DNA of 64,000 bases from Macrostomum lignano (taxonomy: Eukaryota): positions 186,001 to 250,000 of the forward strand of contig NIVC01000570.1 of assembly GCA_002269645.1 (NCBI GenBank). Direction: 5' to 3'. A model generated the notes under the pieces. That model was given only the letters and a program-made list of their open reading frames with translations. It was not told where the DNA came from and ran no database searches. The position numbers and the translations under genes were made by a program. Shown piece after piece: positions 2,993 through 64,000 of the stretch; the first letter of the stretch is position 1, and each line of letters starts with the position of its first letter.

Positions 2993-5494
2993 GTGAGATG
3001 ACAGTGAGATGACAGTGAGATGACAGTGAGATGACAGTGAGATGATGACAGTGAGATGACAGTGAGATGATGACAGTGAGATGACAGTCAGATGATGACA
3101 GTGAGATGACGACAACTGAGATGACAGTGAGATGATGACAGTGAGATGACAGTCAGATGATGACAGTGAGATGACGACAAGTGAGATGACAGTGAGATGA
3201 TGACAGTGAGATGACAGTCAGATGATGACAGTGAGATGACAGTGAGATGATGACAGTGAGATGACGACAAGTGAGATGACAGTGAGATGACAGTCAGATG
3301 ATGACAGTGAGATGACAGTGAGATGATGACAGTGAGATGACGACAAGTGAGATGACAGTGAGATGATGACAGTGAGATGACGACAGTGAGATGACAGTGA
3401 GATGATGACAGTGAGATGACGACAAGTGAGATGACAGTGAGATGATGACAGTGAGATGACGACAGTGAGATGACAGTCAGATGATGACAGTGAGATGATG
3501 ACAGTGAGATAACAGTGAGATAACAGTGAGATGACAGTGAGATGACAGTGAGATGACAGTGAGATAACAGTGAGATAACAGTGAGATGACAATGAGATGA
3601 CAGTGAGATGACAGTGAGATGACAGTGAGATGACAGTGGGATGACAGTGAGATGACAGTGGGATGACAGTGAGATGACAGTGAGATGACAGTGAGATGAC
3701 ACTGAGATGACACTGAGATGACATTGAGATAACACTGAGATGACAATGAGATGACAGTGAGATAACAGTGAGATAACTGTGACATGACAGTGAGATAATG
3801 ACAGTGAGATGACAGTGAGATGACAGTGAGATGACAGTGAGATGACAGTGAGATAACAGTGGGATGACAGTGAGATGACAGTGAGATGACAGTGGGATGA
3901 CAGTGAGATGACAGTGAGATAACAGTGAGATAACAGTGAGATGACAGTGAGATGACAGTGAGATAACAGTGAGATAACAGTGAGATGACAGTGAGATAAC
4001 AGTGAGATAACAGTGAGATAATGACAGTGAGATGACAGTGAGATGACAGTGAGATGACAGTGGGATGACAGTGAGATGACAGTGGGATGACAGTGAGATG
4101 ACAGTGAGATGACAGTCAGATGATGACAGTGAGATGATGACAGTGAGATAACAGTGGGATGACAGTGAGATGACAGTGGGATGACAGTGAGATGACAGTG
4201 AGATGACAGTGAGATGACACTGAGATGACACTGAGATGACATTGAGATAACACTGAGATGACAATGAGATGACAGTGAGATAACAGTGAGATAACTGTGA
4301 CATGACAGTGAGATAATGACAGTGAGATGACAGTGAGATGACAGTGAGATGACAGTGAGATGACAGTGAGATAACAGTGGGATGACAGTGAGATGACAGT
4401 GAGATGACAGTGGGATGACAGTGAGATGACAGTGAGATAACAGTGAGATAACAGTGAGATGACAGTGAGATGACAGTGAGATAACAGTGAGATAACAGTG
4501 AGATGACAGTGAGATAACAGTGAGATAACAGTGAGATAATGACAGTGAGATGACAGTGAGATGACAGTGAGATGACAGTGGGATGACAGTGAGATGACAG
4601 TGAGATGACAGTGGGATGACAGTGAGATGACAGTGGGATGACAGTGAGATGACAGTGAGATAACAGTGAGATAACAGTGAGATGACAGTGAGATGACAGT
4701 GGGATGACAGTGAGATGACAGTGAGATAACAGTGAGATAACAGTGAGATGACAGTGAGATGACAGTGAGATAACAGTGAGATAACAGTGAGATGACAGTG
4801 AGATAACAGTGAGATAACAGTGAGATAATGACAGTGAGATGACAGTGAGATGACAGTGAGATGACAGTGGGATGACAGTGAGATGACAGTGGGATGACAG
4901 TGAGATGACAGTGAGATAACAGTGAGATAACAGTGAGATGACAGTGAGATGACAGTGGGATGACAGTGAGATGACAGTGAGATAACAGTGAGATAACAGT
5001 GAGATGACAGTGAGATGACAGTGAGATGACAGTGAGATAACAGTGAGATAACAGTGAGATGACAGTGAGATAACAGTGAGATAACAGTGAGATAATGACA
5101 GTGAGATGACAGTGAGATGACAGTGAGATGACAGTGGGATGACAGTGAGATGACAGTGAGATAACAGTGAGATAACAGTGAGATGACAGTGAGATGACAG
5201 TGGGATGACAGTGAGATGACACTGAGATGACACTGAGATGACAGTGAGATAACACTGAGATGACAATGAGATGACAGTGAGATAACAGTGAGATAACTGT
5301 GACATGACAGTGAGATAATGACAGTGAGATGACAGTGAGATGACAGTGAGATGACAGTGAGATGACAGTGAGATAACAGTGGGATGACAGTGAGATGACA
5401 GTGAGATAACAGTGAGATGACAGTGAGATGACAGTGAGATAACAGTGAGATAACAGTGAGATGACAGTGAGATAACAGTGAGATAACAGTGAGA
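2993..5494. repeat. 11-bp minisatellite (GAGATGACAGT) with variant units and higher-order blocks
   Basis: About 2.5 kb of GAGATGACAGT, GAGATAACAGT, GGGATGACAGT and GAGATGATGACAGT units. It explains the SHCHLTVISL ORFs. Confidence 0.95.
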
Positions 5495-6138
5495 TTCAGA
5501 AAATGGAACTGAATTAGAATTTGACAAATACAAGCAAGAATTAGTTACTTAAACAGATTAAAGAAAAATTTTTACCTAAGCCACGACCTGCCTCGACTGT
5601 CTCTGTATGTGCCCACGCTGAATTGGGACATTGCTGAATGGCAAGGACTGGCCGAGGTCAGTGTAATAGCAGTTGTGGGGTTAACAGTGGGGTCGCGGGT
5701 CCGCTGTACTGTCTGCCCAGCTTTTTATCTGTGCGGCAGTGCACTGTGGCGAGAGAGCGGTGGGGGAAGAGAGGGGGGCAGAGGCAGCAGAAACCGGTTC
5801 GGGCTGGTCCGCTCTGCACTTCTCTGCAGAAAAACAGTAAACTGCGCTCTAGAGCTGACAGTTAGTTTCAAATACCTTGCAGCCGGCTAAAATAGAGAGA
5901 TAAAAATTAAAAGAAAAGTATAGAAAAGAAAAGAAAACTATAACAACTTCTGTGTCTGTTGCAATGCATATTGGGCCGAAGTAGTCAGGAGAATTTATGC
6001 ATTTGGCTATTAAAGATAATATTACAATATAAAAACAGAAACTTGCAGGAAAACTGCTTTTCAAAACCGGTTAGATTTAAACCATAAAACATCTGTTTTG
6101 CAATTTCAGATTGTAGATAAGAAATAACTATTTTAAGT

Positions 6139-7268: not shown

Positions 7269-7557
7269 GAGACCCAAAGATTACACAAGCCGCTTCAGTC
7301 CCAGCCAAGTTCACCGCGACTACTGCAGGCGCACATGCGGAATTTCATTGGCAGCAAAGCTTGTTTGTGAAGATTATTTTATTATTAGCAGCTCTTGAAC
7401 TCTTGTACAAGCCATAGCTGAGCTATAAACCGGCCTCTTTACCAGTTTGCAAGTGCACTGTGTGCCGCTTTGCCTGTCTACTGCAGCACAGCGAGTTTTT
7501 TTATAGCAGCAGGTGGGCGTTAAATGAAATATATGACAAAAACGGGTCTATTCTGCG

Positions 7558-9532
7558 TTTATCCAACTGCCATTGTAGCTAATGAACTGCAGTTTATCTA
7601 ACTGCCATTGTAGCTAATGAACTGCAGTTTATCCAACTGCCATTGTAGCTAATGAACTGCAGTTTATCCAACTGCCATTGTAGCTAATGAACTGCAGTTT
7701 ATCCAACTGCCATTGTAGCTAATGAACTGCAGTTTATCCAACTGCCATTGTAGCTAATGAACTGCAGTTTATCCAACTGCCATTGTAGCTAATGAACTGC
7801 AGTTTATCTAACTGCCATTGTAGCTAATGAACTGCAGTTTATCCAACTGCCATTGTAGCTAATGAACTGCAGTTTATCCAACTGCCATTGTAGCTAATGA
7901 ACTGCAGTTTATCCAACTGCCATTGTAGCTAATGAACTGCAGTTTATCCAACTGCCATTGTAGCTAATGAACTGCAGTTTATCCAACTGCCATTGTAGCT
8001 AATGAACTGCAGTTTATCCAACTGCCATTGTAGCTAATGAACTGCAGTTTATCCAACTGCCATTGTAGCTAATGAACTGCAGTTTATCCAACTGCCATTG
8101 TAGCTAATGAACTGCAGTTTATCCAACTGCCATTGTAGCTAATGAACTGCAGTTTATCCAACTGCCATTGTAGCTAATGAACTGCAGTTTATCTAACTGC
8201 CATTGTAGCTAATGAACTGCAGTTTATCCAACTGCCATTGTAGCTAATGAACTGCAGTTTATCCAACTGCCATTGTAGCTAATGAACTGCAGTTTATCCA
8301 ACTGCCATTGTAGCTAATGAACTGCAGTTTATCCAACTGCCATTGTAGCTAATGAACTGCAGTTTATCCAACTGCCATTGTAGCTAATGAACTGCAGTTT
8401 ATCCAACTGCCATTGTAGCTAATGAACTGCAGTTTATCCAACTGCCATTGTAGCTAATGAACTGCAGTTTATCTAACTGCCATTGTAGCTAATGAACTGC
8501 AGTTTATCCAACTGCCATAATTGTAGCTAATGAGCTGCAGTTTATCCAACTGCCATTGTAGCTAATGAACTGCAGTTTATCCAACTGCCATTGTAGCTAA
8601 TGAACTGCAGTTTATCCAACTGCCATTGTAGCTAATGAACTGCAGTTTATCCAACTGCCATTGTAGCTAATGAACTGCAGTTTATCCAACTGCCATTGTA
8701 GCTAATGAACTGCAGTTTATCCAACTGCCATTGTAGCTAATGAACTGCAGTTTATCCAACTGCCATTGTAGCTAATGAACTGCAGTTTATCCAACTGCCA
8801 TTGTAGCTAATGAACTGCAGTTTATCCAACTGCCATTGTAGCTAATGAACTGCAGTTTATCCAACTGCCATTGTAGCTAATGAACTGCAGTTTATCCAAC
8901 TGCCATTGTAGCTAATGAACTGCAGTTTATCCAACTGCCATTGTAGCTAATGAACTGCAGTTTATCCAACTGCCATTGTAGCTAATGAACTGCAGTTTAT
9001 CTAACTGCCATTGTAGCTAATGAACTGCAGTTTATCCAACTGCCATAATTGTAGCTAATGAACTGCAGTTTATCCAACTGCCATTGTAGCTAATGAACTG
9101 CAGTTTATCCAACTGCCATTGTAGCTAATGAACTGCAGTTTATCCAACTGCCATTGTAGCTAATGAACTGCAGTTTATCCAACTGCCATAATTGTAGCTA
9201 ATGAACTGCAGTTTATCCAACTGCCATTGTAGCTAATGAACTGCAGTTTATCCAACTGCCATTGTAGCTAATGAACTGCAGTTTATCCAACTGCCATTGT
9301 AGCTAATGAACTGCAGTTTATCTAACTGCCATTGTAGCTAATGAACTGCAGTTTATCCAACTGCCATAATTGTAGCTAATGAGCTGCAGTTTATCCAACT
9401 GCCATTGTAGCTAATGAACTGCAGTTTATCCAACTGCCATTGTAGCTAATGAACTGCAGTTTATCCAACTGCCATAATTGTAGCTAATGAGCTGCAGTTT
9501 ATCTAACTGCCATTGTAGCTAATGAACTGCAG
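7558..9532. repeat. Highly homogeneous 35-bp minisatellite (TTTATCCAACTGCCATTGTAGCTAATGAACTGCAG)
   Basis: About 56 near-identical units. Recurrent variants are C>T (ATCTAACT) and a 3-bp insertion (CCATAATTG). Confidence 0.97.
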
Positions 9533-9925
9533 TATAGGGAATTATCAGGCGAAACGAGGATTAAATAAATGCATCATTGTCAAGCAGCACTGGTTTCAAT
9601 GAGCCAAGGATACGCCCGCTTCAAGGCGTGACTCTGTCGTTGTGACATAAAATCTGCCTTTGAGTCTTGTTCTTTTAACACCCGCCGCCTCTGTAGCACC
9701 GCTGAGCGGGGCATATGGGATTCCTTTTCCATCCGCAAAAGAGATGGGATCTAAAATCCCGACAATTTTCGCAGAAAGCGGCTTAAAAATAATTATCGAT
9801 GAATAATCTCAGAGAGGCCTAATCCCCCTTCTATTCCCCAGCAGCCATTTTTTTGTTGCCTCCTAATTGGACAAAATCTGCGCGGAAATGGGAAATAAGC
9901 AGAGTGGCTGCTCCCATTAGTGGAC

Positions 9926-10597: not shown

Positions 10598-13500
10598 ATG
10601 TACTGTAAGTGCAAACTTCTGACTCTGCTGCTTCTGTGCTTCAATGCCAGCTAATTTAACTGAACCCAACTCTAACCCGACTCAGACTACCCGCTGCTCA
10701 TCAGCCTGCTGCTCCTGGCCTCGGCAGCTGCCAGCGGGTCACCCGATCAGGAGCAGCGCAGGCCACCCCTGACGGCCTCCAGGCGCTCGCCGTACGGCCG
10801 AGACGGCCTCGATTCGCTGAAAGAGAGTCTCGTAACAATAGGAATCCTGCTGCCCGGCGCCAGCGATGACGAGATGCTCAGGCAGTTCAGGGCGTACCTG
10901 GGCATGATCGGCAAGCCCAGGTATGGGCAAACAGCTCAGTACTGCACCCCCTGTCTGCACAGCACTCTTCTGCCCTCTCTCCCTCACACTTCTGCCCTCT
11001 CCCTCACTCTTCTGCCCTCTCTCCCTCACTCTTCTGCCCTCTCTCCCTCACTCTTCTGCCCTCTCTCCCTCACTCTTCTGCCCTCTCTCCCTCACTCTTC
11101 TGCCCTCTCTCCCTCACACTTCTGCCCTCTCCCTCACTCTTCTGCCCTCTCTCCCTCACTCTTCTGCCCTCTCTCCCTCACTCTTCTGCCCTCTCTCCCT
11201 CACTCTTCTGCCCTCTCTCCCTCACTCTTCTGCCCTCTCTCCCTCACTCTTCTGCCCTCTCTCCCTCACTCTTCTGCCCTCTCTCCCTCACTCTTCTGCC
11301 CTCTCTCCCTCACTCTTCTACCTTCTCTCCCTCACTCTTCTGCCCTCTCTCCCTCACTCTTCTGCCCTCTCTCCCTCACTCTTCTGCCCTCTCTCCCTCA
11401 CTCTTCTGCCCTCTCTCCCTCACTCTTCTACCCTCTCTCCCTCACTCTTCTGCCCTCTCTCCCTCACTCTTCTACCCTCTCTCCCTCACTCTTCTACCCT
11501 CTCTCCCTCACTCTTCTGCCCTCTCTCCCTCACTCTTCTGCCCTCTCTCCCTCACTCTTCTGCCCTCTCTCCCTCAATCTTCTGCCCTCTCTCCCTCACT
11601 CTTCTGCCCTCTCTCCCTCACTCTTCTACCCTCTCTCCCTCACTCTTCTGTCCTCTCTCCCTCACTCTTCTGCCCTCTCTCCCTCACTCTTCTGCCCTCT
11701 CTCCCTCACTCTTCTGCCCTCTCTCCCTCACTCTTCTACCCTCTCTCCCTCACTCTTCTACCCTCTCTCCCTCACTCTTCTGCCCTCTCTCCCTCACTCT
11801 TCTGCCCTCTCTCCCTCACTCTTCTGCCCTCTCTCCCTCACTCTTCTGCCCTCTCTCCCTCACTCTTCTGCCCTCTCTCCCTCACTCTTCTGCCCTCTCT
11901 CCCTCACTCTTCTGCCCTCTCTCCCTCACTCTTCTACCCTCTCTCCCTCACTCTTCTACCCTCTCTCCCTCACTCTTCTGCCCTCTCTCCCTCACTCTTC
12001 TGCCCTCTCTCCCTCACTCTTCTACCCTCTCTCCCTCACTCTTCTGCCCTCTCTCCCTCACTCTTATGCCCTCTCTCCCTTACTCTTCTGCCCTCTCTCC
12101 CTCACTCTTCTACCCTCTCTCCCTCACTCTTCTGCCCTCTCTCCCTCACCCTTTCCCATCCTCTTCCTAAATTTCTTCTGCACTCTAACAGCTTTCCCTC
12201 AAAAATTCATAAATGGATGAAGCACCGTGATTAGTGAGCCTGTGAATCTTAGCCAGTTATGAATTATTTTCTACAGTGTAAGGCAACAGTTTTACTTTTC
12301 AACTTTTCAAAGCTACGAGTGTAAATCGAAGCCATTTCCAGTGCGCTAAGTGGCCCCAGGAAGCCTTAGCCGAGAATACAAATTGAACTTGGTGGGTTCG
12401 AGGCTTCCCAAAATGAAGTGGAAATCAGGCTTGCTCAGACAGGCTTCTCAATAGCTGGTCCTTGATTGGTTAATGATGCCCCTGAGAGAGCTTATCTGCT
12501 TATTACGCCAAAGAACAAAGCACCCAAACCCAATGAAATAGCACCCAAATCCAATGAAATGGCACCCAACTCCAATGAAATGGCGCTTAAACCCAATGAA
12601 ATGGCACCCTAACCCAATGAAATGGCACCCAAACCCAATGAAATGGCACCCAAACCCAATGAAATGGCACCCAAACCCAATGAAATGGCACCCAACTTCA
12701 ATGAAATGGTGCTTAAACCCAATAAAATGGCGCCCAAACCCAATGAAATGGCACCCAAACCCAATGAAATAGCACCCAAATCCAATGAAATAGCACCCAA
12801 ATCCAATGAAATGGCACCCAACTCCAATGAAATGGCGCTTAAACCCAATGAAATGACACCCAAACCCAATGAAATGGCACCCAAACCCAATGAAATGGCA
12901 CCCAAACCCAATGAAATGGCACCCAAATCCAATGAAATGGCACCCAAATCCAATGAAATGGCACCCAAATCCAATGAAATGGCACCCAACTCCAATGAAA
13001 TGGCGCTTAAACCCAATGAAATGGCACCCAAACCCAATGAAATGGCACCCAAATCCAATGAAATAGCACCCAAATCCAATGAAATGGCACCCAAATCCAA
13101 TGAAATGACACCCAAATCCAATGAAATGGCACCCTAACCCAATGAAATGGCACCCAAACCCAATGAAATGGCACCCAAACCCAATGAAATGGCACCCAAA
13201 CCCAATGAAATGGCACCCAAACCCAATGAAATGGCACCCAAACCCAATGAAATGGCGCCCAAACCCAATGAAATGGCGCTTAAACCCAATGAAATGGCAC
13301 CCAAACCCAATGAAATGGCACCCAAATCCAATGAAATAGCACCCAAATCCAATGAAATGGCACCCAACTCCAATGAAATGGCACCCAAATCCAATGAAAT
13401 GACACCCAAATCCAATGAAATGGCGCCCAAACCCAATGAACTGGCACCCAAACCCAATGAAATGGCGCCCAAACCCAATGAAATGGCACCCAAACCCAAT

Positions 13501-14795
13501 GAAATGGCACCCAAACCCAATGAAATGGCGCCCAAACCCAATGAAATGGCACCCAAAACCAATGAAATGGCACCCAACTCCAATGAAATGACACCCAAAC
13601 CCAATGAAATGGCACCCAAACCCAATGAAATGGCACCCAAACCCAATGAAATGGCACCCAAACCCAATGAAATGGCACCCAAATCCAATGAAATGGCACC
13701 CAAATCCAATGAAATGGCACCCAAATCCAATGAAATGGCACCCAACTCCAATGAAATGGCGCTTAAACCCAATGAAATGGCACCCAAACCCAATGAAATG
13801 GCACCCAAACCCAATGAAATGGCGCCCAAACCCAATGAAATGGCACCCAAACCCAATGAAATGGCACCCAACTCCAATGAAATGGCGCTTAAACCCAATG
13901 AAATGGCTCCAAACCCAATGAAATGGCACCCAAACCCAATGAAATGGCGCCCAAACCCAATGAAATGGCACCCAAACCCAATGAAATGGCACCCAACTTC
14001 AATGAAATGGTGCTTAAACCCAATAAAATGGCGCCCAAACCCAATGAAATGGCACCCAAACCCAATGAAATGGCACCCAAACCCAATGAAATGGCGCCCA
14101 AACCCAATGAAATGGCACCCAAAACCAATGAAATGGCACCCAACTCCAATGAAATGACACCCAAACCCAATGAAATGGCACCCAAACCCAATGAAATGGC
14201 ACCCAAACCCAATGAAATGGCACCCAAACCCAATGAAATGGCACCCAAACCCAATGAAATGGCGCCCAAACCCAATGAAATGGCACCCAAACCCAATGAA
14301 ATGGCACCCAACTTCAATGAAATGGCGCTTAAACCCAATGAAATGGCTCCAAACCCAATGAAATGGCACCCAAACCCAATGAAATGGCGCCCAAACCCAA
14401 TGAAATGGCACCCAAACCCAATGAAATGGCACCCAACTTCAATGAAATGGTGCTTAAACCCAATAAAATGGCGCCCAAACCCAATGAAATGGCACCCAAA
14501 CCCAATGAAATGGCACCCAAACCCAATGATAAAGCACCTAAATCCAATGAAATGGCACCCAAACCCAATGAAATGGCACCCAAACCCAATGAAAAAGCAC
14601 CTAAATCCAATAAAATGGCACCCAAACCCAATGAAATGGCACCCAAACCCAATGAAATTGCACCCAAACCCAATGAAGGCTCTAATGAGATGATTGTGCA
14701 GAGTATGTACCAAAGTAACTAACATGTAAGTCTGTAAACCGCAAATGAATTTCAGATACGGACGCAGCATTCGCTTCAAGCCGCGGGCCAACTGA
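10598..14795 (+). CDS. npy: Neuropeptide Y/F family prepropeptide (93 aa; predicted mature peptide ends ...AYLGMIGKPRY-amide)
   Basis: Exons 10598-10604 (ATG TAC T|GTAAGT), 10686-10920 and 14756-14795 splice in frame to MYYYPLLISLLLLASAAASGSPDQEQRRPPLTASRRSPYGRDGLDSLKESLVTIGILLPGASDDEMLRQFRAYLGMIGKPRYGRSIRFKPRAN*. It has a signal peptide, Tyr 10 residues from the C-end, and a G-R amidation/cleavage site. The phase-2 intron splits the Arg codon of the PR-Y motif, the conserved NPY/NPF intron position. ATTAAA at 14858-14863. Confidence 0.88.
10962..12150. repeat. 22-bp CT-rich minisatellite in the large NPY intron
   Basis: About 54 units of CTCTCCCTCACTCTTCT(G/A)CCCT; explains ORFs 10874..12220 and 10923..12170. 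Confidence 0.95.
12520..14680. repeat. 21-bp minisatellite (CCCAATGAAATGGCACCCAAA) in the large NPY intron
   Basis: About 100 units. The MAPKPNE, MKWHPNP and GCHFIGF ORFs are its reading frames. Confidence 0.95.
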
Positions 14796-20876: not shown

Positions 20877-21052
20877 CTACTGCGGTTACACAAAGTTACT
20901 CAAATGTACTGTCAAAGAGGTGTGTATAGTAGAGGTAAAGAGAGAAATCAAAGGTCCTGAATTGCCCCAGCGCTGGTTGTATGAAACAATGTCATCGAAG
21001 GTATTGCGCCAGCCACAGCCCTTATGGGAATATTGTTACTATTATTAAAATC

Positions 21053-22590
21053 GATTTGGCTTGTCATCCAATTCACCAACTCCCAAGGCACAGAGAGTGC
21101 ACATGCCTGGCGATTTGGCTTGTCATCCAATTCACCAACTCCCAAGGCACAGAGAGTGCACATGCCTGGCGATTTGGCTTGTCATCCAATTCACCAACTC
21201 CCAAGGCACAGAGAGTGCACATGCCTGGCGATTTGGCTTGTCATCCAATTCACCAACTCCCAAGGCACAGAGAGTGCACATGCCTGGCGATTTGGCTTGT
21301 CATCCAATTCACCAACTCCCAAGGCACAGAGAGTGCACATGCCTGGCGATTTGGCTTGTCATCCAATTCACCAACTCCCAAGGCACAGAGAGTGCACATG
21401 CCTGGCGATTTGGCTTGTCATCCAATTCACCAACTCCCAAGGCACAGAGAGTGCACATGCCTGGCGATTTGGCTTGTCATCCAATTCACCAACTCCCAAG
21501 GCACAGAGAGTGCACATGCCTGGCGATTTGGCTTGTCATCCAATTCACCAACTCCCAAGGCACAGAGAGTGCACATGCCTGGCGATTTGGCTTGTCATCC
21601 AATTCACCAACTCCCAAGGCACAGAGAGTGCACATGCCTGGCGATTTGGCTTGTCATCCAATTCACCAACTCCCAAGGCACAGAGAGTGCACATGCCTGG
21701 CGATTTGGCTTGTCATCCAATTCACCAACTCCCAAGGCACAGAGAGTGCACATGCCTGGCGATTTGGCTTGTCATCCAATTCACCAACTCCCAAGGCACA
21801 GAGAGTGCACATGCCTGGCGATTTGGCTTGTCATCCAATTCACCAACTCCCAAGGCACAGAGAGTGCACATGCCTGGCGATTTGGCTTGTCATCCAATTC
21901 ACCAACTCCCAAGGCACAGAGAGTGCACATGCCTGGCGATTTGGCTTGTCATCCAATTCACCAACTCCCAAGGCACAGAGAGTGCACATGCCTGGCGATT
22001 TGGCTTGTCATCCAATTCACCAACTCCCAAGGCACAGAGAGTGCACATGCCTGGCGATTTGGCTTGTCATCCAATTCACCAACTCCCAAGGCACAGAGAG
22101 TGCACATGCCTGGCGATTTGGCTTGTCATCCAATTCACCAACTCCCAAGGCACAGAGAGTGCACATGCCTGGCGATTTGGCTTGTCATCCAATTCACCAT
22201 CTCCCAAGGCACAGAGAGTGCACATGCCTGGCGATTTGGCTTGTCATCCAATTCACCAACTCCAAAGGCACAGAGAGTGCACATGCCTGGCGATTTAGCT
22301 TGTCATCCAATTCGCCAACTCCCAAGGCACAGAGAGTGCACATGCCTGGCGATTTGGCTTGTCATCCAATTCACCAACTCCCAAGGCACAGAGAGTGCAT
22401 ATGCCTGGCGATTTGGCTTGTCATCCAATTCACCAACTCCCAAGGCACAGAGAGTGCACATGCCTGGCGATTTGGCTTGTCATCCAATTCACCAACTCCC
22501 AAGGCACAGAGAGTGCACATGCCTGGCGATTTGGCTTGTCATCCAATTCACCAACTCCCAAGGCACAGAGAGTGCACATGCCTAGCGATT
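21053..22590. repeat. 59-bp minisatellite (GATTTGGCTTGTCATCCAATTCACCAACTCCCAAGGCACAGAGAGTGCACATGCCTGGC)
   Basis: About 26 near-identical head-to-tail units with no spacers. The unit has no stop in any + frame, which produces the three 424-536 aa ORFs. Confidence 0.97.
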
Positions 22591-24702: not shown

Positions 24703-24746
24703 CAGAAGGGATGGTGGAAAACCGTTCTAGCAATGAGCGTGGCGGT

Positions 24747-25578
24747 NNNNNNNNNNNNNNNNNNNNNNNNNNNNNNNNNNNNNNNNNNNNNNNNNNNNNN
24801 NNNNNNNNNNNNNNNNNNNNNNNNNNNNNNNNNNNNNNNNNNNNNNNNNNNNNNNNNNNNNNNNNNNNNNNNNNNNNNNNNNNNNNNNNNNNNNNNNNNN
24901 NNNNNNNNNNNNNNNNNNNNNNNNNNNNNNNNNNNNNNNNNNNNNNNNNNNNNNNNNNNNNNNNNNNNNNNNNNNNNNNNNNNNNNNNNNNNNNNNNNNN
25001 NNNNNNNNNNNNNNNNNNNNNNNNNNNNNNNNNNNNNNNNNNNNNNNNNNNNNNNNNNNNNNNNNNNNNNNNNNNNNNNNNNNNNNNNNNNNNNNNNNNN
25101 NNNNNNNNNNNNNNNNNNNNNNNNNNNNNNNNNNNNNNNNNNNNNNNNNNNNNNNNNNNNNNNNNNNNNNNNNNNNNNNNNNNNNNNNNNNNNNNNNNNN
25201 NNNNNNNNNNNNNNNNNNNNNNNNNNNNNNNNNNNNNNNNNNNNNNNNNNNNNNNNNNNNNNNNNNNNNNNNNNNNNNNNNNNNNNNNNNNNNNNNNNNN
25301 NNNNNNNNNNNNNNNNNNNNNNNNNNNNNNNNNNNNNNNNNNNNNNNNNNNNNNNNNNNNNNNNNNNNNNNNNNNNNNNNNNNNNNNNNNNNNNNNNNNN
25401 NNNNNNNNNNNNNNNNNNNNNNNNNNNNNNNNNNNNNNNNNNNNNNNNNNNNNNNNNNNNNNNNNNNNNNNNNNNNNNNNNNNNNNNNNNNNNNNNNNNN
25501 NNNNNNNNNNNNNNNNNNNNNNNNNNNNNNNNNNNNNNNNNNNNNNNNNNNNNNNNNNNNNNNNNNNNNNNNNNNNNN
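24747..25578. other. Assembly gap (832 N)
   Basis: Run of N; ORFs crossing it are artefacts. Confidence 0.99.
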
Positions 25579-26505
25579 AAAGTATAGCTTATTCATTAAA
25601 TAGGCGAGTGACCCATCTAGTGTTTTTATTATCTATGTTAATATCTAAATTATCGAATTTCAGTGGGACCATAGACAAACAATGCATGGAATGAAGAGAG
25701 AGGATACAGAGAAGAGAAACATAAAGCTGGACGTGAAAAGACTTACGTGGTTTACTGGATTTTGGGCCATAGACAAAAAGTTGCAAACAGGGGATTAAGA
25801 GGGTTGGAAAAGAATGAGATGCGGAGATTAAGAGAGAATAAAATGTGAATTGCTACATTCGTTTGACCATGGAGAACCAGCCACTTACCGTCCACTACAC
25901 AAAAAAATAGTTTGTCCGTACTTTGTTTTAACGTTTACTATAAATAGTCATCTATTATCCCGAGTTTGAATTCTTTATTCTATAGTCATTCCAATCTATG
26001 CATTATCCAGTGAAGTTTATGTGAAGCAATAAATTGAATGTGCTTAAGGTTTAACCATAGACAATGCGAATGATCTTCCATTGTGGGAACTATTTCTAGA
26101 AACAAAGACAGGGGTAAAGAGTAAAGGACTAAAGGCCAATCAACAACATTTTCAATCCATTTTGTTTTTCTCCGGCTTTGTAAGCTGGTGTGACTGGCAG
26201 CTACTGTTAACTTCCAATGCCAAGGTCCGTCGACGTGAATTCGACCAAAAAATCTCTAAAATTGATTCACTTTGCTAAAAATTAGTTGATTTTGGCATCT
26301 TACACAGCTAGGAGTCAAATTGCAGCGAGTTTGATAAACGAGTACATGTACTGTGAAATATTTCTAGCGGTACTCGTTTGATTGGCAGCTGTCGTCAAAC
26401 AAAGAAAGGCTGCATAGTACTCTCGCAGACAAGCAAACCGTGTAGCTATGCTCATGCTCACGTAAAAGCAAAAAAGTCAAACAACGATGCTCTTTGGACC
26501 GGAAA

Positions 26506-26542
26506 CACGTGCCAATCCGTTGCGCATAAATTGGGAACTCCC
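26506..26542 (+). promoter_or_regulatory. Candidate core promoter of the 66-aa secreted peptide gene
   Basis: CACGTG at 26506-26511, CCAAT at 26512-26516, TATA-like CATAAA at 26525-26530 and palindrome-like GGGAACTCCC at 26533-26542, about 90 bp upstream of the ATG. Confidence 0.35.
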
Positions 26543-26622
26543 AACTGCTCAAGAACTCAACTTTAAACTCGACTCAATCTACACACAGCTCGAAGACTCG
26601 ACTCGACTCGACTCAAGCAATC

Positions 26623-26823
26623 ATGAAGTGGCAAATCGCTCTCGGACTTTTGCTGTGCGCAGCCCTGGCCGTCGCCGTGCCCAGCCAGGAGGAGAAGGCC
26701 ATGGCCGAACGTGTGCTGGAGGAGACTCTGTCCAACCTGGACGAGTCCAGCGTGTCGGAGGAGAAGGCCGTCGACAACGCTAAGAAGTGGCTCAGGGTTA
26801 GGGCTAGGGTTAGGATCGGTTAA
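26623..26823 (+). CDS. Small secreted prepropeptide (66 aa): signal peptide, acidic spacer, KK, WLRVRARVRI-G; unknown family
   Basis: MKWQIALGLLLCAALAVA is a textbook signal peptide. The ORF has GC3-rich codons like the verified genes here and an AATCATG start context. The spacer has 10 D/E, then dibasic KK and a terminal Gly before TAA. A splice at GT 26797/26809 cannot be excluded. Confidence 0.72.
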   Translation: MKWQIALGLLLCAALAVAVPSQEEKAMAERVLEETLSNLDESSVSEEKAVDNAKKWLRVRARVRIG

Positions 26824-27917
26824 ATCTGTCTGTCGCACAAAATCTGAGATCGAACTCGAAGTGTTTCGAACTCGCTTCATCGAAAGGCCAAGACTCGTGG
26901 GCACTAAGAGCTCACTGCTGACCGTACTCTGAACTCTGACCTGTGACCGCTTTATTGACTGATCAGAATTACCAACAAATATAACAGCAATGACAGTCTG
27001 TCTAAGCTAACAGCACCTTTTGGAAGTTATGTTAAGTTTTATTTGCAAGTTATACGACATTAAACGGATTGGTAGTGGAGTTTCTTTGCAGGAAGTGATT
27101 ATTAAAATGATTTTTACTGACTTTTCTAGGCAGCAATTTTTTTTACTCATGATAGGGCTAGAAAGAAATACTAATCGTACGAACTTCACAACTCTTAACT
27201 TAATTCGAGATCTTAGCACCTCGTTGGTGGTTTCTTCTCCTCGTGATTGTTCCCAGTGGAGTATTGATTCAAATATCGTCATTGTGGGAACTGATTTCTA
27301 GAAGCAAACAAGGACGGGATTGCGGGAACGCCGGTCTAAAAGCGAATTTGCTACATTTTCAATCCAATTTGTTTGTTTCGAAGAACTCCTTTGTGAGCTG
27401 ATGGGACTGGTAGCTACTAAGATCGTACTAACTTCCAATGCCAAGTTCCTTCGACGTGAATTCAACCAAAAAATTGATTCACTTTGAAAATAATGTTTTG
27501 TTTCTAGGTGTCCCATACAACTAAGAGTAAAAAATGCAGAGTTTTATACACCTGCAATCTGAAATATCCCAAGCTGTACTTGTTTGATCGATAGTCGTAA
27601 AAATTATTCTGACAACATGCTTCAGACTATGCGTCTTTTAGGATGTTTTTGAGCATTTTCACTTGTATGCGTATCTGTTCTCACAGTACTCACAATTGGT
27701 GACGAACATGTTTAGAAACAAAAATGTTTCCCCGAAGAGATCCACACTCTGGACACTTTTGCAATAAGACACTTCTGTGGGAAGAGATTCACATAAGGAT
27801 CACTAGGAACACTTTGTTATAGACTCTAGTCTAGTAGTCCTTGGATTCAAAATGGCACATCCCACAAGACATCTTATCTTTTAGTAAGAGACACACTCAA
27901 TAGGATGTATTCTAAGA

Positions 27918-28306
27918 CAGGTGTCGCAAACCCGGCCCGCGAAGCCTGATCTTTATCCGACCCTTGGGTTCTTTGAAATTTCACAATAGCAATCCGGCCC
28001 GCTCAGGCCTGTCTCTTCTTAGCTCCCCCTCTCTCTTCTCTCCTCTCTCCCCTCTCTCCTCTCTTCTTCTCTCCTCTCTCCTCTCTTCTCTTATCTCCGC
28101 CTTTCTCCTTCTCCTCTCACCCTCTTCTGCTCTTCTCTCCCCTCTATCCCCTCTTCCCTAATCCCTCGTGTTATTATCCTCTCTTATCTTCTCTCTCATC
28201 CCATCTCTCGCTTCTCCTCTCCCATCTTCTATTCCCTCTCTTCTTCTCTTTCATGAGCTGGATTCTTTATCAGGACCTTGAGGTAAAAAGTTTGCCGACA
28301 CCCCTG
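27918..28306. mobile_element. hAT/Charlie-like MITE with CT-rich low-complexity core
   Basis: Termini are CAGGTGTCGCAAAC and GTTTGCCGACACCCCTG. The flanking 8-mers TTCTAAGA and TTCTAGGA match 7/8 and fit the NTCTAGAN target typical of Charlie-type hATs. Confidence 0.75.
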
Positions 28307-32977: not shown

Positions 32978-33968
32978 CTTGTCGCTCAGTTTATCTCAGT
33001 GCCTGTCTCAGCTTGTCAGTCGAGTTGTATCCTGTGTGTGTCTCAGTGCCTGCAACAGCTTGTCAGTCGAGTTGTATCCTGTGTGTGTCTCAGTGCCTGC
33101 AACAGCTTGTCAGTCGAGTTGTATCCTGTGTGTGTCTCAGTGCCTGCAACAGCTTGTCAGTCGAGTTGTATCCTGTGTGTCTCAGTGCCTGCAACAGCTT
33201 GTCAGTCGAGTTGTATCCTGTGTGTGTCTCAGTGCCTGCAACAGCTTGTCAGTCGAGTTGTATCTTGTGTGTCTCAGTGCCTGCAACAGCTTGTCAGTCG
33301 AGTTGTATCTTGTGTGTGTCTCAGTGCCTGCAACAGCTTGTCAGTCGAGTTGTATCCTGTGCGTCTCAGTGCCTGCAACAGCTTGTCAGTCGAGTTGTAT
33401 CCTGTGTGTGTCTCAGTGCCTACAACAGCTTGTCAGTCGAGTTGTATCCTGTGTGTCTCAGTGCCTGCAACAGCTTGTCAGTCGAGTTGTATCTTGTGTG
33501 TCTCATTGCCTGCAACAGCTTGTCAGTCGAGTTGTATCTTGTGTGTCTCAGTGCCTGCAACAGCTTGTCAGTCGAGTTGTATCTTGTGTGTCTCAGTGCC
33601 TGCAACAGCTTGTCAGTCGAGTTGTATCCTGTGTGTGTCTCAGTGTCTGCAACAGCTTGTCAGTCGAGTTGTATCCTGTGTGTGTCTCAGTGCCTGCAAC
33701 AGCTTGTCAGTCGAGTTGTATCCTGTGTGTGTCTCAGTGCCTGCAACAGCTTGTCAGTCGAGTTGTATCCTGTGTGTGTCTCAGTGCCTGCAACAGCTTG
33801 TCAGCTGAGTTGTATCCTGTGTGTGTCTCAGTGCCTGCAACAGCTTGTCAGTTGAGTTGTATCCTGTGTGTGTCTCAGTGCCTGCAACAGCTTGTCAGTC
33901 GAGTTGTATCCTGTGTGTGTCTCAGTGCCTGCAACAGCTTGTCAGCTGAGTTGTATCCTGTGTGTGTC
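32978..33968. repeat. 45/47-bp minisatellite (CAGCTTGTCAGTCGAGTTGTATCCTGTGTGT(GT)CTCAGTGCCTGCAA)
   Basis: About 21 units differing by one GT dinucleotide; explains the Cys-rich ORFs 32967..33977. Confidence 0.95.
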
Positions 33969-34502
33969 ACAACTTGACGAAAGCTCGTCTCAGCTATCGT
34001 ATTAGTCGAATGGTGCAACATCATTGGCCTCGGGTTCGAATCTAGTCGCATTCAATTCGTAAATCGTTTCCAAAGCCTTACTTGCCCGCTCTCAAGTGGC
34101 TGCGTACACAGCCTGGCATTGAAACAGGCTCGTCTGTACGGAATTGTTAACAAAACAAATAGACAGCAAAGAAGTCAGTTCCAAGTAGAAATATCGCACC
34201 TACGAAGTATTTCTTAGACTAGTCATGACCATTTCCATAAACAGTGACACACTCGACAGAAATGTCCCGGTTTTGATAAAATCTCCGCGACAGACCGGCA
34301 GGGATATGCGGAACAGCTTCTCCAGCCCTGAGCGGTGCCGAGGGAATCGCGTCGGCTCATAATTATGCAGACTCAATAAGCTGGATGCAGACTGTCCCTG
34401 GCCTAGCAATGCTGCAAGCTGAATAATTCAATCACCACCGCACAGCGGTGTGTGCGCTACTGTTGAAGGCTAATCCTGTGTGCGACAAATCCCTGCATGT
34501 CT

Positions 34503-35361
<859 letters not shown>

Positions 35362-46800: not shown

Positions 46801-49195
46801 TCAGCCGGCGCCACTGCCCTCCATCTGGTCCGTCACGCTCAGTCCATAGATTCGCTTCCGGAATGCCTCCCTGTGCTGCTCTTGTAAACTGCTCTTCGGC
46901 TTGCTCCGCTTCAGATTGCCGTCCCACTGCAGGTCAACCAGACCGCCGCGGCCGGCAATTTGACGCTTCACCCGATTGGCGAAGGCAACCTTAGTGGAAT
47001 TTCATTTCGATACATATCGTCTGAACTTTTGTCAATTATGCTACTGTAGCATCACTGTGCAAAGACTAAATTATGAGGCGAAATGGGGATATTTTGTTAT
47101 GGGGAGGCTCTAGAGAGATTCTAAGGGATACCTGTGGGCGATTCACATGGTTACCTGTGGGAAGTTCTCAGGGATACCTGTGGGCGATTCTCAGGGATAC
47201 CTGTGGGCAATTCTCAAGGATACCTGTGGGCAATTCTCAGGGATACCTGTGGGCAATTCTCATGGATACCTGTGGGCAATTCTCAGGGATACCTGTGGGA
47301 AATTCTCATGGATACCTGTGGGCGATTCTCAGGGAGCCTGTAGGAAATTCTCAAAGAAATTTAAGAGCGAATTCCCAGGGACAATTAAGGGGCGATTGTC
47401 AGAAATTGTCAGACGATTCTAAAGAAGCTCGTGGGCGATTCTCGGCAATACAGTATTGAGAGAGCGACCAAACTCACGGAACTCTCGCCCTCCTGCTGAA
47501 TCTGCGGCGGCAGATACCAGACGTCAGCAACAATGGCCCAGCTGGTCATCATCATGAACAGGTAGGTGACCATGCCGCAGGCGGAGCTATTCCAGAAGCA
47601 GTCGGCAAATCTCGGATCGTATTTGATGGCCACCGGGTAGACAACGCCGCCAGCTTCGAAGCCGCCTTTACGGAACATCATCACGGAGGTGTTGTTGATG
47701 CAGGTGCCCTCGGGGAAGATCAGCACAGGCGGCAGGCCTGGTGTGGACACGTGCTCCTCAAGTTTGCGTTTGACAACGCTGGCATCGCTGGATTCCGAGC
47801 GTTCGAACCAGATGTGCGGCGAGGTCCGGTGCAGGGTCTTCTGCATGAAGCCGGTGAAGCCGCCATGGCTCTGGCCCACTATAGAGAACACCTGGACGGG
47901 TGGGGCGCGAGCGGGCATCGATTTCAGGGCGATTCGAAATGCAGGTTGATCTACGATAACTACGTAGAACATGTGTAGGCAAACTACGGCCCGCTCAATG
48001 TTTGTCTCCTCTCAGCGTTATCATTCTCTCTAATCTCCTTTCTTCTCTTCTCCTCTCCTCTCGATCCTCTACTCTCTCCTCTCCTCTTCTCTTTTTCTCT
48101 TCTCTCTCCTCAGGCTGGCAAACTCCGGCCCCGCAAAGCCTCTCTATCCGGCCCTCGGGGTCGTTTACCTCACAATCCGGCCCGCTCAATGTTTGTCCCC
48201 TGGCAGCGCTATTCTCTCTAATCTCCTCTCCTCTCTCTTTTCTTCTCTCCTTTCCTCTCTTCTCTACCCTCTCCTCTCCCTTGATCCTCTACTTTCTTCT
48301 TTCCTTCTTCCTCTCTCCCTCTCTCCTCTCCTTTCCTCTTATCTCGCCCCTCCTTTCTTCAATATTCCCTTCTATACTACAGGCGTGAGCAAAGCACAAC
48401 AACAGCAATTGGCACCTGTCTGCAGCCCAGCACAACAACATCAATCGGTGAGGTGTGATTGGCCACGCAGATGCCGTTATTCTGCGGCATGTTCTCAACG
48501 TCGTGAAAGCGCAGCACGGCCGAGAACGCCCTGGCAAAGAGTCGGAAAGCTGTCGGGGTCAGGATTGAGTTGAGGTAGCGGCGCAGGCCGGGCCAGGGCA
48601 GCAGCGCAATGATCAGCGACCCAATGACCAGGTACAGCACGGCGGTGAGGGCCAGAAGCATCCGGAATGGGAACAGGATGCAGTAGCGCAGAAAGCAGCC
48701 CAGCACCCAATAGCAGGTGAGGCGGCTGCTAATGAACTGATACTTATTAGTTCGGGTCAGCAGATTCCACGAGGCCAGGTCTTCCGCAGCGAACCGTTTC
48801 GTCACCTCATCCTCGATGATGGACTCGATGCCGCTCTGCACAAACACGCACAGGTCGGACAGGTGGAATGGCCGCTTCTGACTCGATGTTGAAGCCTTCG
48901 ATGGGTCGTCGCTGCTGGCGCAGTCGGCGTGCAGCAACTCGATGCCCTCGGTGGTGAGCTTGGCGTGCCGTTGAATTAGTCGATTGTCTCGGCTGAGATT
49001 GTCACTGCTCTCCTTCCTAGACGGCGGCCTGCGCTTCTCAACGGCCTGCTCAAACAGGTGCAGCAGTATCCTGATGTACAGCCGGCGGATGCCGAAGGAG
49101 AAGTTGAATACGGCAAGCAGGGTGGCCACTAGCAGGACCAGACCGACTAAGCGGCCGATCAGCTGCACCGCCCAGTAGAATGCTTCCAGCGGCAT
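46801..49195 (-). CDS. GPAT4: Glycerol-3-phosphate acyltransferase, GPAT3/GPAT4 (AGPAT9/AGPAT6) type (460 aa)
   Basis: Exons 49195-48416, 47891-47478 and 46989-46801, all phase 0. It has acyltransferase motif I NHTSPID, plus WFERSE, PVLIFPEGTCINNTSVMMF, MTSWAIV and GGLVDLQWDG. GPAT3 and GPAT4 cannot be told apart from this sequence. Confidence 0.93.
47123..47335. repeat. 23-bp minisatellite (GGGATACCTGTGGGCAATTCTCA) in GPAT intron 2
   Basis: Period 23 (GGGATACC at 47171 and 47194); about 9 units. Confidence 0.9.
47985..48365. mobile_element. Fragments of the Charlie-like MITE family with CT-rich core, in GPAT intron 1
   Basis: CAGGCTGGCAAACTCCGGCCCCGCAAAGCC...CACAATCCGGCCCGCTCA resembles the left arm at 27918 onward. 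The segment CCCGCTCAATGTTTGTC occurs twice. Confidence 0.55.
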
Positions 49196-49789
49196 GCAAC
49201 GAAGCGAGTAGATTAGCAATCCGTTTTGTAGTGTTAGAATCGAGCTTTTTATTGTATATGGCCCATATTAGAGAATTTGGGCTTTTTATCGTTTTCGTGA
49301 AATTCGAAGGAATATCATTTCAGTAAAGAAGTTTTTGTCTCAAAAAGCAAATGTATGCATTCGATAGTCTATGGTACATAGGGATGTTGGATCGTATCGT
49401 ACGCAGTCCAAAATGATTTAGAGTTCCCTCGCGTCGCGTTCAAGCAAAAACTAATAAAGTTGAAGTTGATCGCAGATGAGCAAAGAGCAATACATGATAT
49501 TCCTTCATCCATGTTTCACAGGGATGCAAGCCTTGACCATAGAAAAACAAGAAATTTCAACAGACAAAGATGGATATGGCAGGTGAAGTATTAATTTAGC
49601 AAGCAGAGCTTCACCCCGAACAGCTTAAACGGCGAAGATATTATCAGAATATATATATCGGTTTCGATTTCAACATGTACAGCCCCAATTTCCTAATCGG
49701 TTTCTCTATAGAACTATAGACCCCATTTTCAGCCTATAGACCCCAGGACCAGATAAACAACCTATAGAACACGACTGTGAGCCGGAGGA

Positions 49790-50591
49790 AAGAAGAGATG
49801 AGAGAAGAGATGAATTAGGAGAGGGAGAGGAAGGAGAGGAGGAGAGGGGAGGAGAGAGTAGAGAATCGAGGAGAGAGGAGAGGAGAGAGATGAGAGAGTA
49901 GAGGATCGAGAGAAGAGAGGAGAGGAGAAGAGAGGGGAGGAGAGAGAAGAGGGAAGGAGAGAGGAGAGGAGAGAGTAGAGGAGAAGAGAGGAGAAGAGAG
50001 AGTAGAGGAGAAGAGAGGAGAAGAGGGAAGGAGAGAGGAGAGGAGAGAGTAGAGGAGAAGAGAGGAGAGGAGAAGAGAGGGGAGGAGAGAGAAGAGGGAA
50101 GGAGAGAGGAGAAGAGAGGAGAAGAGAAGAGAGGAGAGGAGAGAGTAGAGGAGAAGAGAGGAGAAGAGAGGAGAAGAGGGAAGGAGAGAGGAGAGGAGAG
50201 AGTAGAGGAGAAGAGAGGAGAAGAGAGGAGAAGAGAGGAGAAGAGGGAAGGAGAGAGTAGAGGAGAAGAGAGGAGAAGAGAGAAGAGAGGAGAAGAGAGG
50301 AGAGGAGAAGAGAGGAGAGGAGAAGAGAGGAGAGGAGAGAGGAGAGGAGAGAGTAGAGGAGAAGAGAGGAGAAGAGAGGAGAAGAGGGAAGGAGACAGGA
50401 GAGGAGAGAGTAGAGGAGAAGAGAGGAGAAGAGAGGAGAAGAGGGAAGGAGAGAGTAGAGGAGATGAGAGGAGAAAGGAGAGGGAAGTGAGAAAAGAGAA
50501 TAGGGCCGGATTGCTATTGTGAGGCTTCAAAGGATCCCCAAAGACCGGACAGAGAGGATTTGAGGCCTGCGGTCCAGAGTTTTCCGACCCC
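49790..50591 (-). mobile_element. Charlie-like MITE arm (50500-50591, inverted) attached to a ~700-bp GA-rich polypurine tract
   Basis: The reverse complement of 50503-50591 begins CAGGGGTCGGAAAAC and contains TCACAATAGCAATCCGGCCC, shared with the 27918 element. 49790-50500 is almost purely A/G. Confidence 0.65.
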
Positions 50592-63700: not shown

Positions 63701-63879
63701 GTTGACAAGAAGTTGATGATTAGCTGCGCGATGTGATAGCTGAAGCCGGCCATGGCAGCCGCTAGGAACAGCATCCACAGCAGCTTCAGGGGCAGCGAGC
63801 GCCTGGCGTGGATTCGGCCGAATCCGTGAGCGGTGGTTGTTGAGATAAAGTCCGAAATGGTGGGCACGCTTAGCTCCAT
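60703..63879 (-). CDS. DEG/ENaC (amiloride-sensitive sodium channel family) subunit (613 aa)
   Basis: Exons 63879-63274, 63184-62967 and 61720-60703 with compatible phases (0, then 2). It has the N-terminal TTAHG gating motif, TM1 LWMLFLAAAM, PDITVC, YGNCFRF, a Cys-rich thumb (CLPNC) and TM2 FSDIGGILGLYLGMSLLTVCEL. Confidence 0.92.
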
Positions 63880-64000
63880 GCTGCACAATCTGACAATTCA
63901 CCCTTCAAGGATCAAACCTTATTAAGGATCAAAAGTTAACTTTTCTTGAAGATTCAGCCCTGCTATGGTTGCGTGGGTTTAATAAAAAATTAAGCCGATA

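Follow-up and report, generated by a model that had tools for sequence, protein, structure and literature searches.

Frog-skin antimicrobial peptide (AMP) precursors form multigene families in which a conserved prepro region is joined to a hypervariable cargo, often amidated by way of a terminal Gly. In those of the preprodermaseptin/ranid type treated in PMC13444074, a signal peptide is followed by an acidic spacer, then a convertase site and finally the cargo, and the same order is seen in a small gene of the flatworm Macrostomum lignano, located at positions 26623-26823 of a 64,000-nucleotide stretch of contig NIVC01000570.1 (the window in what follows). In free-living flatworms gene-encoded antimicrobial effectors are essentially uncharacterised and a defence-peptide class has not yet been described; a 2021 review of planarian innate immunity mentions AMPs only in other phyla (PMC7958881).

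The gene is already present in GenBank as a hypothetical protein, and it is one member of a large family, not a singleton. We regard it as very probably a real secreted-prepropeptide gene of this family. With a good deal less assurance, we favour the view that its product would be secreted for host defence and act on membranes (as an antimicrobial or, in a wider sense, a lytic or deterrent agent), as part of a diversified arsenal.

A probable secreted-peptide gene and its paralogues

The original prediction, made from the letters of the DNA, described an intronless open reading frame (ORF) of 66 amino acids (aa) composed of an 18-aa signal peptide, a 35-aa spacer, KK, WLRVRARVRI and a Gly before the stop. 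When the sequence was re-read this layout proved exact, and the recount of the spacer also agreed (8 Glu, 2 Asp and 3 basic residues, that is 10 acidic and 3 basic, with EEKA present twice). From the N-terminus the product reads MKWQIALGLLLCAALAVA, VPSQEEKAMAERVLEETLSNLDESSVSEEKAVDNA, KK, WLRVRARVRI and G, encoded as follows.

26623-26823, plus strand: ORF of 66 codons, with ATG at 26623 and TAA at 26821-26823
26623-26676, plus strand: predicted signal peptide MKWQIALGLLLCAALAVA, 18 aa, A-V-A preceding the predicted cut
26677-26781, plus strand: acidic pro-region (spacer) VPSQEEKAMAERVLEETLSNLDESSVSEEKAVDNA, 35 aa, net charge -7
26782-26787, plus strand: dibasic KK (AAG AAG), predicted convertase site, codons invariant in 17 of 17 unique coding sequences (CDS)
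26788-26817, plus strand: cargo WLRVRARVRI with its alternating hydrophobic/Arg core, from sequence, Tandem Repeats Finder (TRF) and hydrophobic moment
26818-26823, plus strand: GGT TAA, Gly (putative amide donor) and stop, GGT-TA[AG] being invariant in 20 of 20 copies

The signal peptide was called from its hydrophobic core and the AXA rule, and its cut predicted from the -3/-1 positions. The hydrophobic moment of WLRVRARVRI is 1.45 at 180 degrees versus 0.18 at 100 degrees, a value reached by 1.7% of shuffles, which backs the amphipathic beta-strand character proposed for the cargo at the outset. AlphaFold2, run on the precursor with the family alignment, returned an all-helical model (predicted local distance difference test 66, predicted template modelling score 0.25) that is uninformative for the processed peptide.

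A protein search returned a 100% match to the M. lignano hypothetical protein BOX15_Mlig004045g1/g2 plus twelve to 14 close paralogues; an exact look-up of the 66-aa protein gave no record, since the deposited models are extended at the 5' end. Over 7.6 kb the window shares 98.8% identity with NIVC01000181.1 (locus L001), the contig carrying g1, so that by sequence identity the window gene is an allele or homeolog of BOX15_Mlig004045g1/g2. The BOX15 models derive from a genome-guided StringTie/TACO annotation combined with a de novo transcriptome, trans-splicing and poly(A) data (PMC5730564). As this annotation is RNA-seq-guided the models represent transcribed units, and the lack of expression named beforehand as a danger to the proposal is countered by models 100% identical to the window protein. 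Coverage over the cargo should derive from the Mlig004045 copies, since their cargo sequence is unique to them.

Seven paralogue loci were fetched and copies were counted across 8 loci, giving 20 intact copies (17 unique CDS), all of them intronless. They are arranged in tandem and inverted clusters, with four copies and one 3' fragment within 10 kb at L001, five copies within 20 kb at L002, and pairs at other loci; no pseudogene was found among the copies in the fetched loci, and no other family copy lies within the window. The ATG, the AAG AAG of the KK site and the GGT-TA[AG] of the Gly-stop are invariant in all 17 unique CDS, so the homologues of this Arg/Val (RV) type keep both processing landmarks on which the proposal depended. 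Length differences are all in frame: the spacer has a 3-nt gap at each of two places, and the cargo varies by 6, 12 and 24 nt.

The cores of these copies are WLRVRARVRI, IFRVRARIHI, IFRVRVRI, IFRVRVHI, FVRLRVRI, FVRVRVRL, FVRVHVRF and FIHIHF, with FVRVRARIRL and IFRVHVRF coming from the protein search alone. Every core begins with two hydrophobic residues, continues in strict basic/hydrophobic alternation and places a hydrophobic residue before the Gly. The basic positions are kept across switches of codon family (AGG, AGA, CGT and CGC for Arg; CAT and CAC for His), and thus the alternation is preserved in the protein itself and does not reflect a frozen repeat. For RV-type cores of 8 and 10 residues and for an 18-residue insertion variant the beta-strand moment is 1.0-1.45, and for FIHIHF it is 0.59. 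By pooled Nei-Gojobori comparison, a crude measure here given few sites and non-independent pairs, pN/pS is 0.30 in the signal peptide, 0.91 in the spacer and 0.78 in the cargo; the cargo is the most divergent part (pS 0.43, pN 0.33) and the signal peptide the most constrained.

The insertion variant is found at L002 19985-20203 and L006 8695-8913, both on the minus strand, where 24 nt added in frame give WLRVRARVRVG-SRRRSRS-G and the Gly-stop is kept. With an internal Gly followed by a basic cluster, these copies could yield two alternative amidated products or an 18-mer. Several deposited models are chimeras of neighbouring copies (L003 10001-12935; P0008, P0034 and P0030): P0008 and P0034 each join two tandem copies, with a duplicated spacer or a second signal peptide as the outcome, and P0030 runs antisense through an inverted neighbour and then into the real ORF.

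Splicing from GT 26797, 26809 or 26819 to a different C-terminus had also been foreseen as fatal to the proposal. A single spliced model is found, that of paralogue P0012 (UniRef A0A1I8G6Q8), in which a 62-nt GT..AG intron leads from AGG/GTTAGG, a sequence resembling a splice donor, to an AG in the 3' untranslated region (UTR) and replaces the tail as ...WLRVRAR/TDVIWLALTTQLI. An equivalent splice in the window, from a GT in the RV core (e.g. 26809) to the AG at 26847-26848, would abolish the Gly-amide peptide and add IELEVFRT..., unrelated to the TDVIWLAL... of the paralogue. We hold this to be very improbable for the window gene: the RNA-seq-guided models of at least 12 paralogues end unspliced at the Gly-stop, those of BOX15_Mlig004045g1/g2 are collinear with the genome through the C-terminus, and an invariant GGT-TAR with cargo indels that stay in frame is not expected of an intron. 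Moreover, the 3' flanks of the copies differ by non-3n indels, so that a tail of the P0012 type is not conserved between them. For these reasons the spliced form is, in our view, either an artefact of annotation or an isoform of minor importance at most.

The coding status of the ORF itself was also weighed. Its length alone is within chance (31 ORFs of at least 30 aa occur in 2.5 kb here), an antisense ORF of 113 aa overlaps it, and several frames are stop-poor. The DNA of the RV core, AGG GTT AGG GCT AGG GTT AGG, is a degenerate TTAGGG run of ~3.5 units (26792-26814), the only telomere-like run in the 64 kb (TRF period 12 at 26789-26814). A chance ORF or non-coding transcript over a (TTAGGG)n remnant, or the longer antisense ORF as the true product, would fit these observations; two further controls favour neither strand, as the antisense frame stays open in most copies and substitutions lack a clear third-position excess, leaving codon-position variability without preference for the sense frame. 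Nevertheless, we find this explanation scarcely credible. The alternation persists where Arg is written CGT, CGC or AGA and His CAT or CAC, which argues for selection on the protein; ATG, KK and Gly-stop do not vary, indels remain in frame, and the layout is kept in relatives with entirely different DNA (below). A putative promoter upstream and a conserved 3' UTR downstream both lie in plus orientation, and Rfam 15 gave no match with E <= 1 in 25600-28000. It is this comparative evidence (20 copies, invariant landmarks, codon switches and distant relatives) that leads us to accept sense coding, and on the orientation of promoter and UTR, the landmarks and the superfamily-level layout the antisense ORF was rejected as the gene.

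An interstitial telomere relic was likewise discarded, as the run has only ~3.5 degenerate units and paralogues keep the pattern with non-TTAGGG codons; the resemblance stems from the use of AGG for Arg and GTT for Val. The run of AGG codons and the two-residue (6-nt) steps in length suggest that 6-nt slippage generates cargo length variants, and such Arg-Val slippage in a TTAGGG-like tract would be a simple route to peptide length diversity.

One prepro region with many cargos

To place the gene among known proteins we relied on an exhaustive hidden Markov model (HMM) search over 1.84 billion representatives and a separate profile search over 5.8 billion proteins. Relatives were found only in M. 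lignano, plus one diverged genomic contig of 929 nt (L008, from SRA run SRR31628392); among the 1.84 billion representatives the HMM found none outside Macrostomum. In M. lignano they amount to a superfamily of ~40 annotated, unnamed genes, all labelled hypothetical protein. Members have in common a signal peptide of the form MKWQ[LIF][AV]LGLLLC..., an acidic pro-region of 31-39 aa and a basic site, which is KK, RKK or KKK in most of them, and the layout is kept in relatives at only ~40-50% identity.

On this prepro region sit at least 24 mutually unrelated, mostly cationic cargos of 6-37 aa with charge up to +14, and 19 of the 24 distinct cargos end in G or GK. They include GFHVHFH-G, FHLHLP-GK, FRIRIRWGRVARNVLRLL-GK, WLLRRIRIRWRRVLRVASRVYRIYRYLPI-GK, LFFRRRRRRHYFVYHSRRRYYRRRYHRRHHVHIVAYH-G and WFSRWFRITYRRRGGERRYLRSYFRL-G, the helix-like cargo WRRRRRFRWRKAIRVAGKVAKAVL and the two-Cys cargo WRIKSACKIFRRLLHLARKCYAKK-G, together with Pro/Arg-repeat and Arg/Tyr/His-rich types. 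The net charge of the pro-region follows that of the cargo inversely (Spearman rho -0.84 over distinct cargos and -0.65 over 31 sequences, drawn from non-independent paralogues), so that charge is compensated at near-constant spacer length. This correlation supports the suggestion, made when the gene was first noticed, that the acidic spacer masks the charge of the cargo.

The other-species member occupies 1-929 of Logan contig SRR31628392_42504. Its prepro region is 54% identical to that of the window gene, and its cargo, FLRVRLPRVRMPRVRLPRVRLPRLRVRFRWSKK, is a Pro/Arg repeat (RVRLP, 4-5 times) that lacks the terminal Gly; the promoter core is kept, and the 3' flank is a 'ccgaccttgacc...ctgcccac' repeat.

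Initially the peptide had not been recognised as a member of any known family, and the searches agree. No Pfam family scored above threshold and a PDB sequence search found no relative, the best match being an engineered protein at E = 0.09. The closest Pfam candidate, PF22991 Lock_Gag1-like, was dismissed, as it reached 21.5 bits against a gathering threshold of 27 over 22 residues of low-complexity acidic spacer; the borderline match of P0008 to the same family arises because that chimeric model duplicates the spacer. Apo-CIII and other Pfam entries were likewise sub-threshold hits in the low-complexity spacer. Literature searches found no publication describing the family in the library covered, and a supplement match to Mlig024774.g6 was set aside as an unrelated gene with a PRPF19-cluster name. 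Overall, we rate these genes as an apparently independent, flatworm-specific prepropeptide superfamily, whose RV and His subfamilies would be unusually short natural beta-strand alternators.

The gene unit and its surroundings

Flank conservation was read from an alignment of 10 copies. The duplicated unit spans ~26372-26990, the distal upstream block forming its 5' edge and the putative 3' UTR its 3' edge, and the following elements lie within or beside it.

26372-26415, plus strand: distal upstream block with CAGCTG at 26386-26391, from the 10-copy alignment, with blastn similarity from 26376
26499-26531, plus strand: putative proximal promoter core, 97-124 nt upstream of the ATG
26595-26614, plus strand: (GACTC)4 microsatellite in the 5' UTR, from TRF and the alignment
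26824-26990, plus strand: putative 3' UTR with conserved blocks at ~26917-26941 (gctgaccgtactctgaactctgacc) and ~26957-26986 (tgactgatcagaattaccaacaaatataac)
26079-26320, plus strand: left copy of a direct repeat, ~250 nt, 71% identical to 27280-27532
27280-27532, plus strand: right copy of the direct repeat, ~250 nt, bracketing the gene with the left copy

The proximal block comprises CCGGAAA (26499-26505), an E-box CACGTG (26506-26511), CCAAT (26512-26516) and a TATA-like ATAAAT (26526-26531), and is near-invariant across the RV-type copies. Its core, GGAAAcACGTGCC...cATAAAT, is common to all subfamilies: in the helical, WFSRW, GFHVHFH and other-species subfamilies GGAAA[AC]ACG..TG[CG]C..[CT]ATAAAT lies at -86 to -123. 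The promoter-like motifs reported at first are thus real in the sense of being conserved, both among RV-type copies and in distant subfamilies, and the retention of the core in the most distant of these suggests that the superfamily may be co-regulated. The assignment is not clean, since some paralogue transcript models extend past the TATA-like box (their 5' ends map to 26484-26577); such models could be read-through transcripts in dense clusters or have imprecise boundaries.

The number of GACTC units varies between copies. The Mlig004045g1 model (P0001) has two units and its own contig, L001, has four, a 10-nt discrepancy hidden in the annotated, 5'-extended partial CDS of Mlig004045g1.

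The two bracketing repeats lie ~1.2 kb apart and are present only here and at the L001 counterpart, not beside other paralogues. They may be the remnant of an old local duplication; a family-wide mobile element was rejected, as the repeat is private to these two places. An assembly gap (N run) occupies ~24715-25585, and upstream of it the window no longer matches L001, which at the equivalent position has a further three family genes together with a 3' piece of the window gene (L001 4407-4466, QKAVDNAKKWLRVRARVRIG). The mismatch reflects a difference between haplotypes or subgenomes, or else a join made during scaffolding.

At two homeologous loci a gene for an EF-hand protein of 917 aa lies directly downstream of FVRVRVRL gene pairs (L003 15837-22935 and L007 13421-20240), and provides a useful syntenic marker by which the family could be followed into further Macrostomum genomes. 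The window itself is extremely rich in long minisatellite arrays (648-22590, 32994-35361, 47118-50499 and others), which account for most of its large ORFs; they include period 11 x 219 at 2993-5495, period 35 x 56 at 7553-9533, period 21 x 103 at 12520-14677, period 59 x 26 at 21052-22590 and (TCTA)216 at 34500-35361. At 47409-49219, minus strand, two ORFs match Pfam Acyltransferase (PF01553), and on this basis the region probably holds a gene for a glycerolipid acyltransferase, interrupted by one or more introns. At 60703-63888, also on the minus strand, each half of Pfam ASC (amiloride-sensitive/DEG-ENaC channel) is matched by one ORF (E = 4e-24 and 3e-23), which points to a multi-exon DEG/ENaC gene. 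Channels of this kind include peptide (RFamide)-gated ones in other invertebrates; this gene lies 34 kb from the peptide gene and no link is implied.

Candidate function and comparison with known systems

The view that these are defence peptides is favoured by the combination of a conserved prepro region, a hypervariable cationic cargo, tandem amplification into multigene clusters and lineage restriction, which together are characteristic of host-defence peptide families such as the frog-skin AMP precursors. In this scenario the precursor would enter the endoplasmic reticulum (ER) and lose its signal peptide after AVA; in the regulated secretory pathway the acidic pro-region would neutralise or mask the cationic tail until release, which would take place from gland, epidermal or gut cells. 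A convertase would cut after KK, a carboxypeptidase would trim basic residues where the cargo ends in GK, and PHM/PAL would turn the terminal Gly into an amide, leaving WLRVRARVRI-NH2, a predicted, perfectly alternating amphipathic beta-strand of net charge ~+5. The calculated monoisotopic mass of this amide is 1322.852 Da (2+ ion at 662.434), and those of IFRVRVRI-NH2 and FIHIHF-NH2 are 1056.703 and 811.449. PC2, PHM and PAL are present in flatworms (PMC9042389). Amidated peptides designed with alternating Arg and Val (PEP8R and related) are bactericidal when touched by cells (PMC12940918), so that the chemistry would be adequate for such a role. Expression site, processing and activity are all inferences from sequence here.

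Several observations weigh against a defence role. Cargos of 6-10 residues only just reach, or fall short of, the minimum length of natural linear AMPs; at neutral pH the His-only cousins FIHIHF, GFHVHFH and FHLHLP carry no charge, and the AVYKPNYYKD subfamily is not cationic-amphipathic. The charge correlation and pN/pS values come from related paralogues and few sites, and family gene IDs are absent from the supplements of M. lignano papers searched for expression data. The predicted C-terminal [R/H]-[F/I/L]-amide, moreover, resembles the ends of RFamide-type neuropeptides.

This last resemblance leads to a neuropeptide or peptide-hormone precursor, whose amidated product would act through a G-protein-coupled receptor or a peptide-gated channel, the paralogues being receptor-ligand variants. 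Signal peptide, dibasic site and C-terminal Gly are all found, as in amidated flatworm neuropeptides (PMC9042389); the 6-10 aa cargo is of neuropeptide size, and the paralogues FVRVHVRF and IFRVHVRF end in VRF-G and would yield an RFamide end. However, neuropeptide families conserve the mature peptide while the spacer drifts, whereas here the cargo is the most variable part; in the superfamily it is exchanged for unrelated sequences of up to 37 aa and +14, dozens of tandem one-peptide copies are unusual for prohormones, and no relative was seen in another flatworm or spiralian among the representatives searched. We therefore think a signalling role unlikely.

About as unlikely, to our judgement, is a self-assembling secreted material, in which cationic or metal-bridged amyloid-like fibrils would serve in mucus, adhesive, rhabdite or eggshell and act on microbes only in a secondary way, if at all. 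With its strict hydrophobic/polar alternation the cargo has a maximal beta-strand moment, the acidic pro-region would hold the peptides soluble until release, and the seawater habitat screens charge. Designed amidated VR/VK peptides form beta-sheet fibril gels under salt screening and His versions gel with Zn (PMC12940918), while IHIHIQI and LHLHLRL, closely like FIHIHF, FHLHLP and GFHVHFH, are Zn-dependent catalytic amyloids (PMC10008563, PMC12995857). Helix-like, Pro/Arg-repeat and two-Cys cargos, on the other hand, are not beta-strand alternators, and self-assembly is thus not the common function of the superfamily; single strands of 6-10 residues assemble less readily than designed 20-residue hairpins, and no link was found to known M. 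lignano adhesive proteins. A speculative extension, to which we give the same low weight, is that the Arg/Val and His/hydrophobic series form a natural library of ultra-short amidated beta-strand peptides, solubilised by the pro-region and assembling on release into seawater. It is similarly doubtful that the resulting matrix would be antimicrobial, adhesive or even catalytic, a natural counterpart of MAX/PEP8R gels and catalytic-amyloid heptapeptides.

More doubtful still are reproductive peptides (seminal-fluid or otherwise sexually selected) diversified by sexual conflict and not by pathogens. Lineage restriction, tandem amplification and fast evolution are typical of reproductive proteins, and the M. 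lignano transcripts covered in PMC5977470 include many uncharacterised, prostate-limited secreted ones, which counts in favour. Against this, no family ID turned up in the 3 Mb of supplementary files on Macrostomum genes related to reproduction (PMC7336406), and extreme cationicity with a charge-matched acidic propiece characterises cytotoxic cargo and not the seminal peptides known so far.

Were the defence-effector view correct, the family would fill the missing effector arm of flatworm immunity, and the strategy of joining a conserved prepro region to a hypervariable cargo, known from frogs, would have arisen independently once more. Natural amidated beta-strand peptides of 6-10 residues would offer templates for peptide antibiotics or materials, and the shared promoter would be a ready-made reporter for the producing cell type in M. 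lignano, a transgenic model flatworm tractable by RNA interference.

When set beside known systems, the flatworm neuropeptide prohormones (FMRFamide-like peptides, FLPs, and neuropeptide F; planarian set in PMC2953531) share the signal peptide, dibasic cleavage site, Gly-amidation signal and PC2/PHM/PAL dependence. Unlike them, the present family leaves its cargo unconserved among paralogues, this being the part that diverges most, carries one peptide per tiny gene in large tandem arrays, reaches extreme cationicity across the superfamily and has no orthologue that we found outside Macrostomum. The C-terminal Arg-Phe-amide that defines FLPs is absent from the window peptide, which would end in Arg-Ile-amide; two paralogue types end in VRF-G.

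Peptides of (IRIK)2-NH2 type, 8-mers, are of designed alternating sequence. MAX1, MARG1 and PEP6R/PEP8R show the same strict Val/Arg (or Ile/Arg) alternation, C-terminal amide and high charge, and those of the PEP8R type are contact-bactericidal and assemble once their charge is screened by salt (PMC12940918). All of these are made synthetically, as hairpins of 20 residues or as 8-12-mers; the flatworm peptides are encoded in the genome as single strands of 6-10 residues and begin with an aromatic/aliphatic dipeptide (WL, IF, FV). The catalytic-amyloid heptapeptides match the predicted FIHIHF-NH2, FHLHLP-NH2 and GFHVHFH-NH2 in hydrophobic/His alternation, length and amide end, a likeness confined to these sister His-type subfamilies and not extending to the Arg-type peptide of the window.

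Myticalins place the anionic propeptide C-terminal to the cargo; the Macrostomum spacer is N-terminal. They too form a lineage-restricted multigene family, in which linear cationic peptides are combined with an anionic pro-region and dibasic processing sites, and they came to light when sequences of a marine spiralian were mined (PMC5577615). The two families are dissimilar in sequence; activity has been shown for myticalins and is predicted for the Macrostomum family. The likeness is weaker than that to the frog-skin AMP precursors, and the window gene is a member of neither group.

In the case of the amphibian precursors the layout is shared by the window gene, a resemblance in working and not in membership, whereas sequence homology is lacking, the profile searches having found only Macrostomum and the one Logan contig. 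The Macrostomum genes differ further in being intronless, in using KK and not KR and in having much shorter cargos, which in the window subfamily are beta-strand alternators and not amphipathic helices. The best reading of this comparison is that the family would be analogous, not homologous, to the frog-skin AMP precursors.

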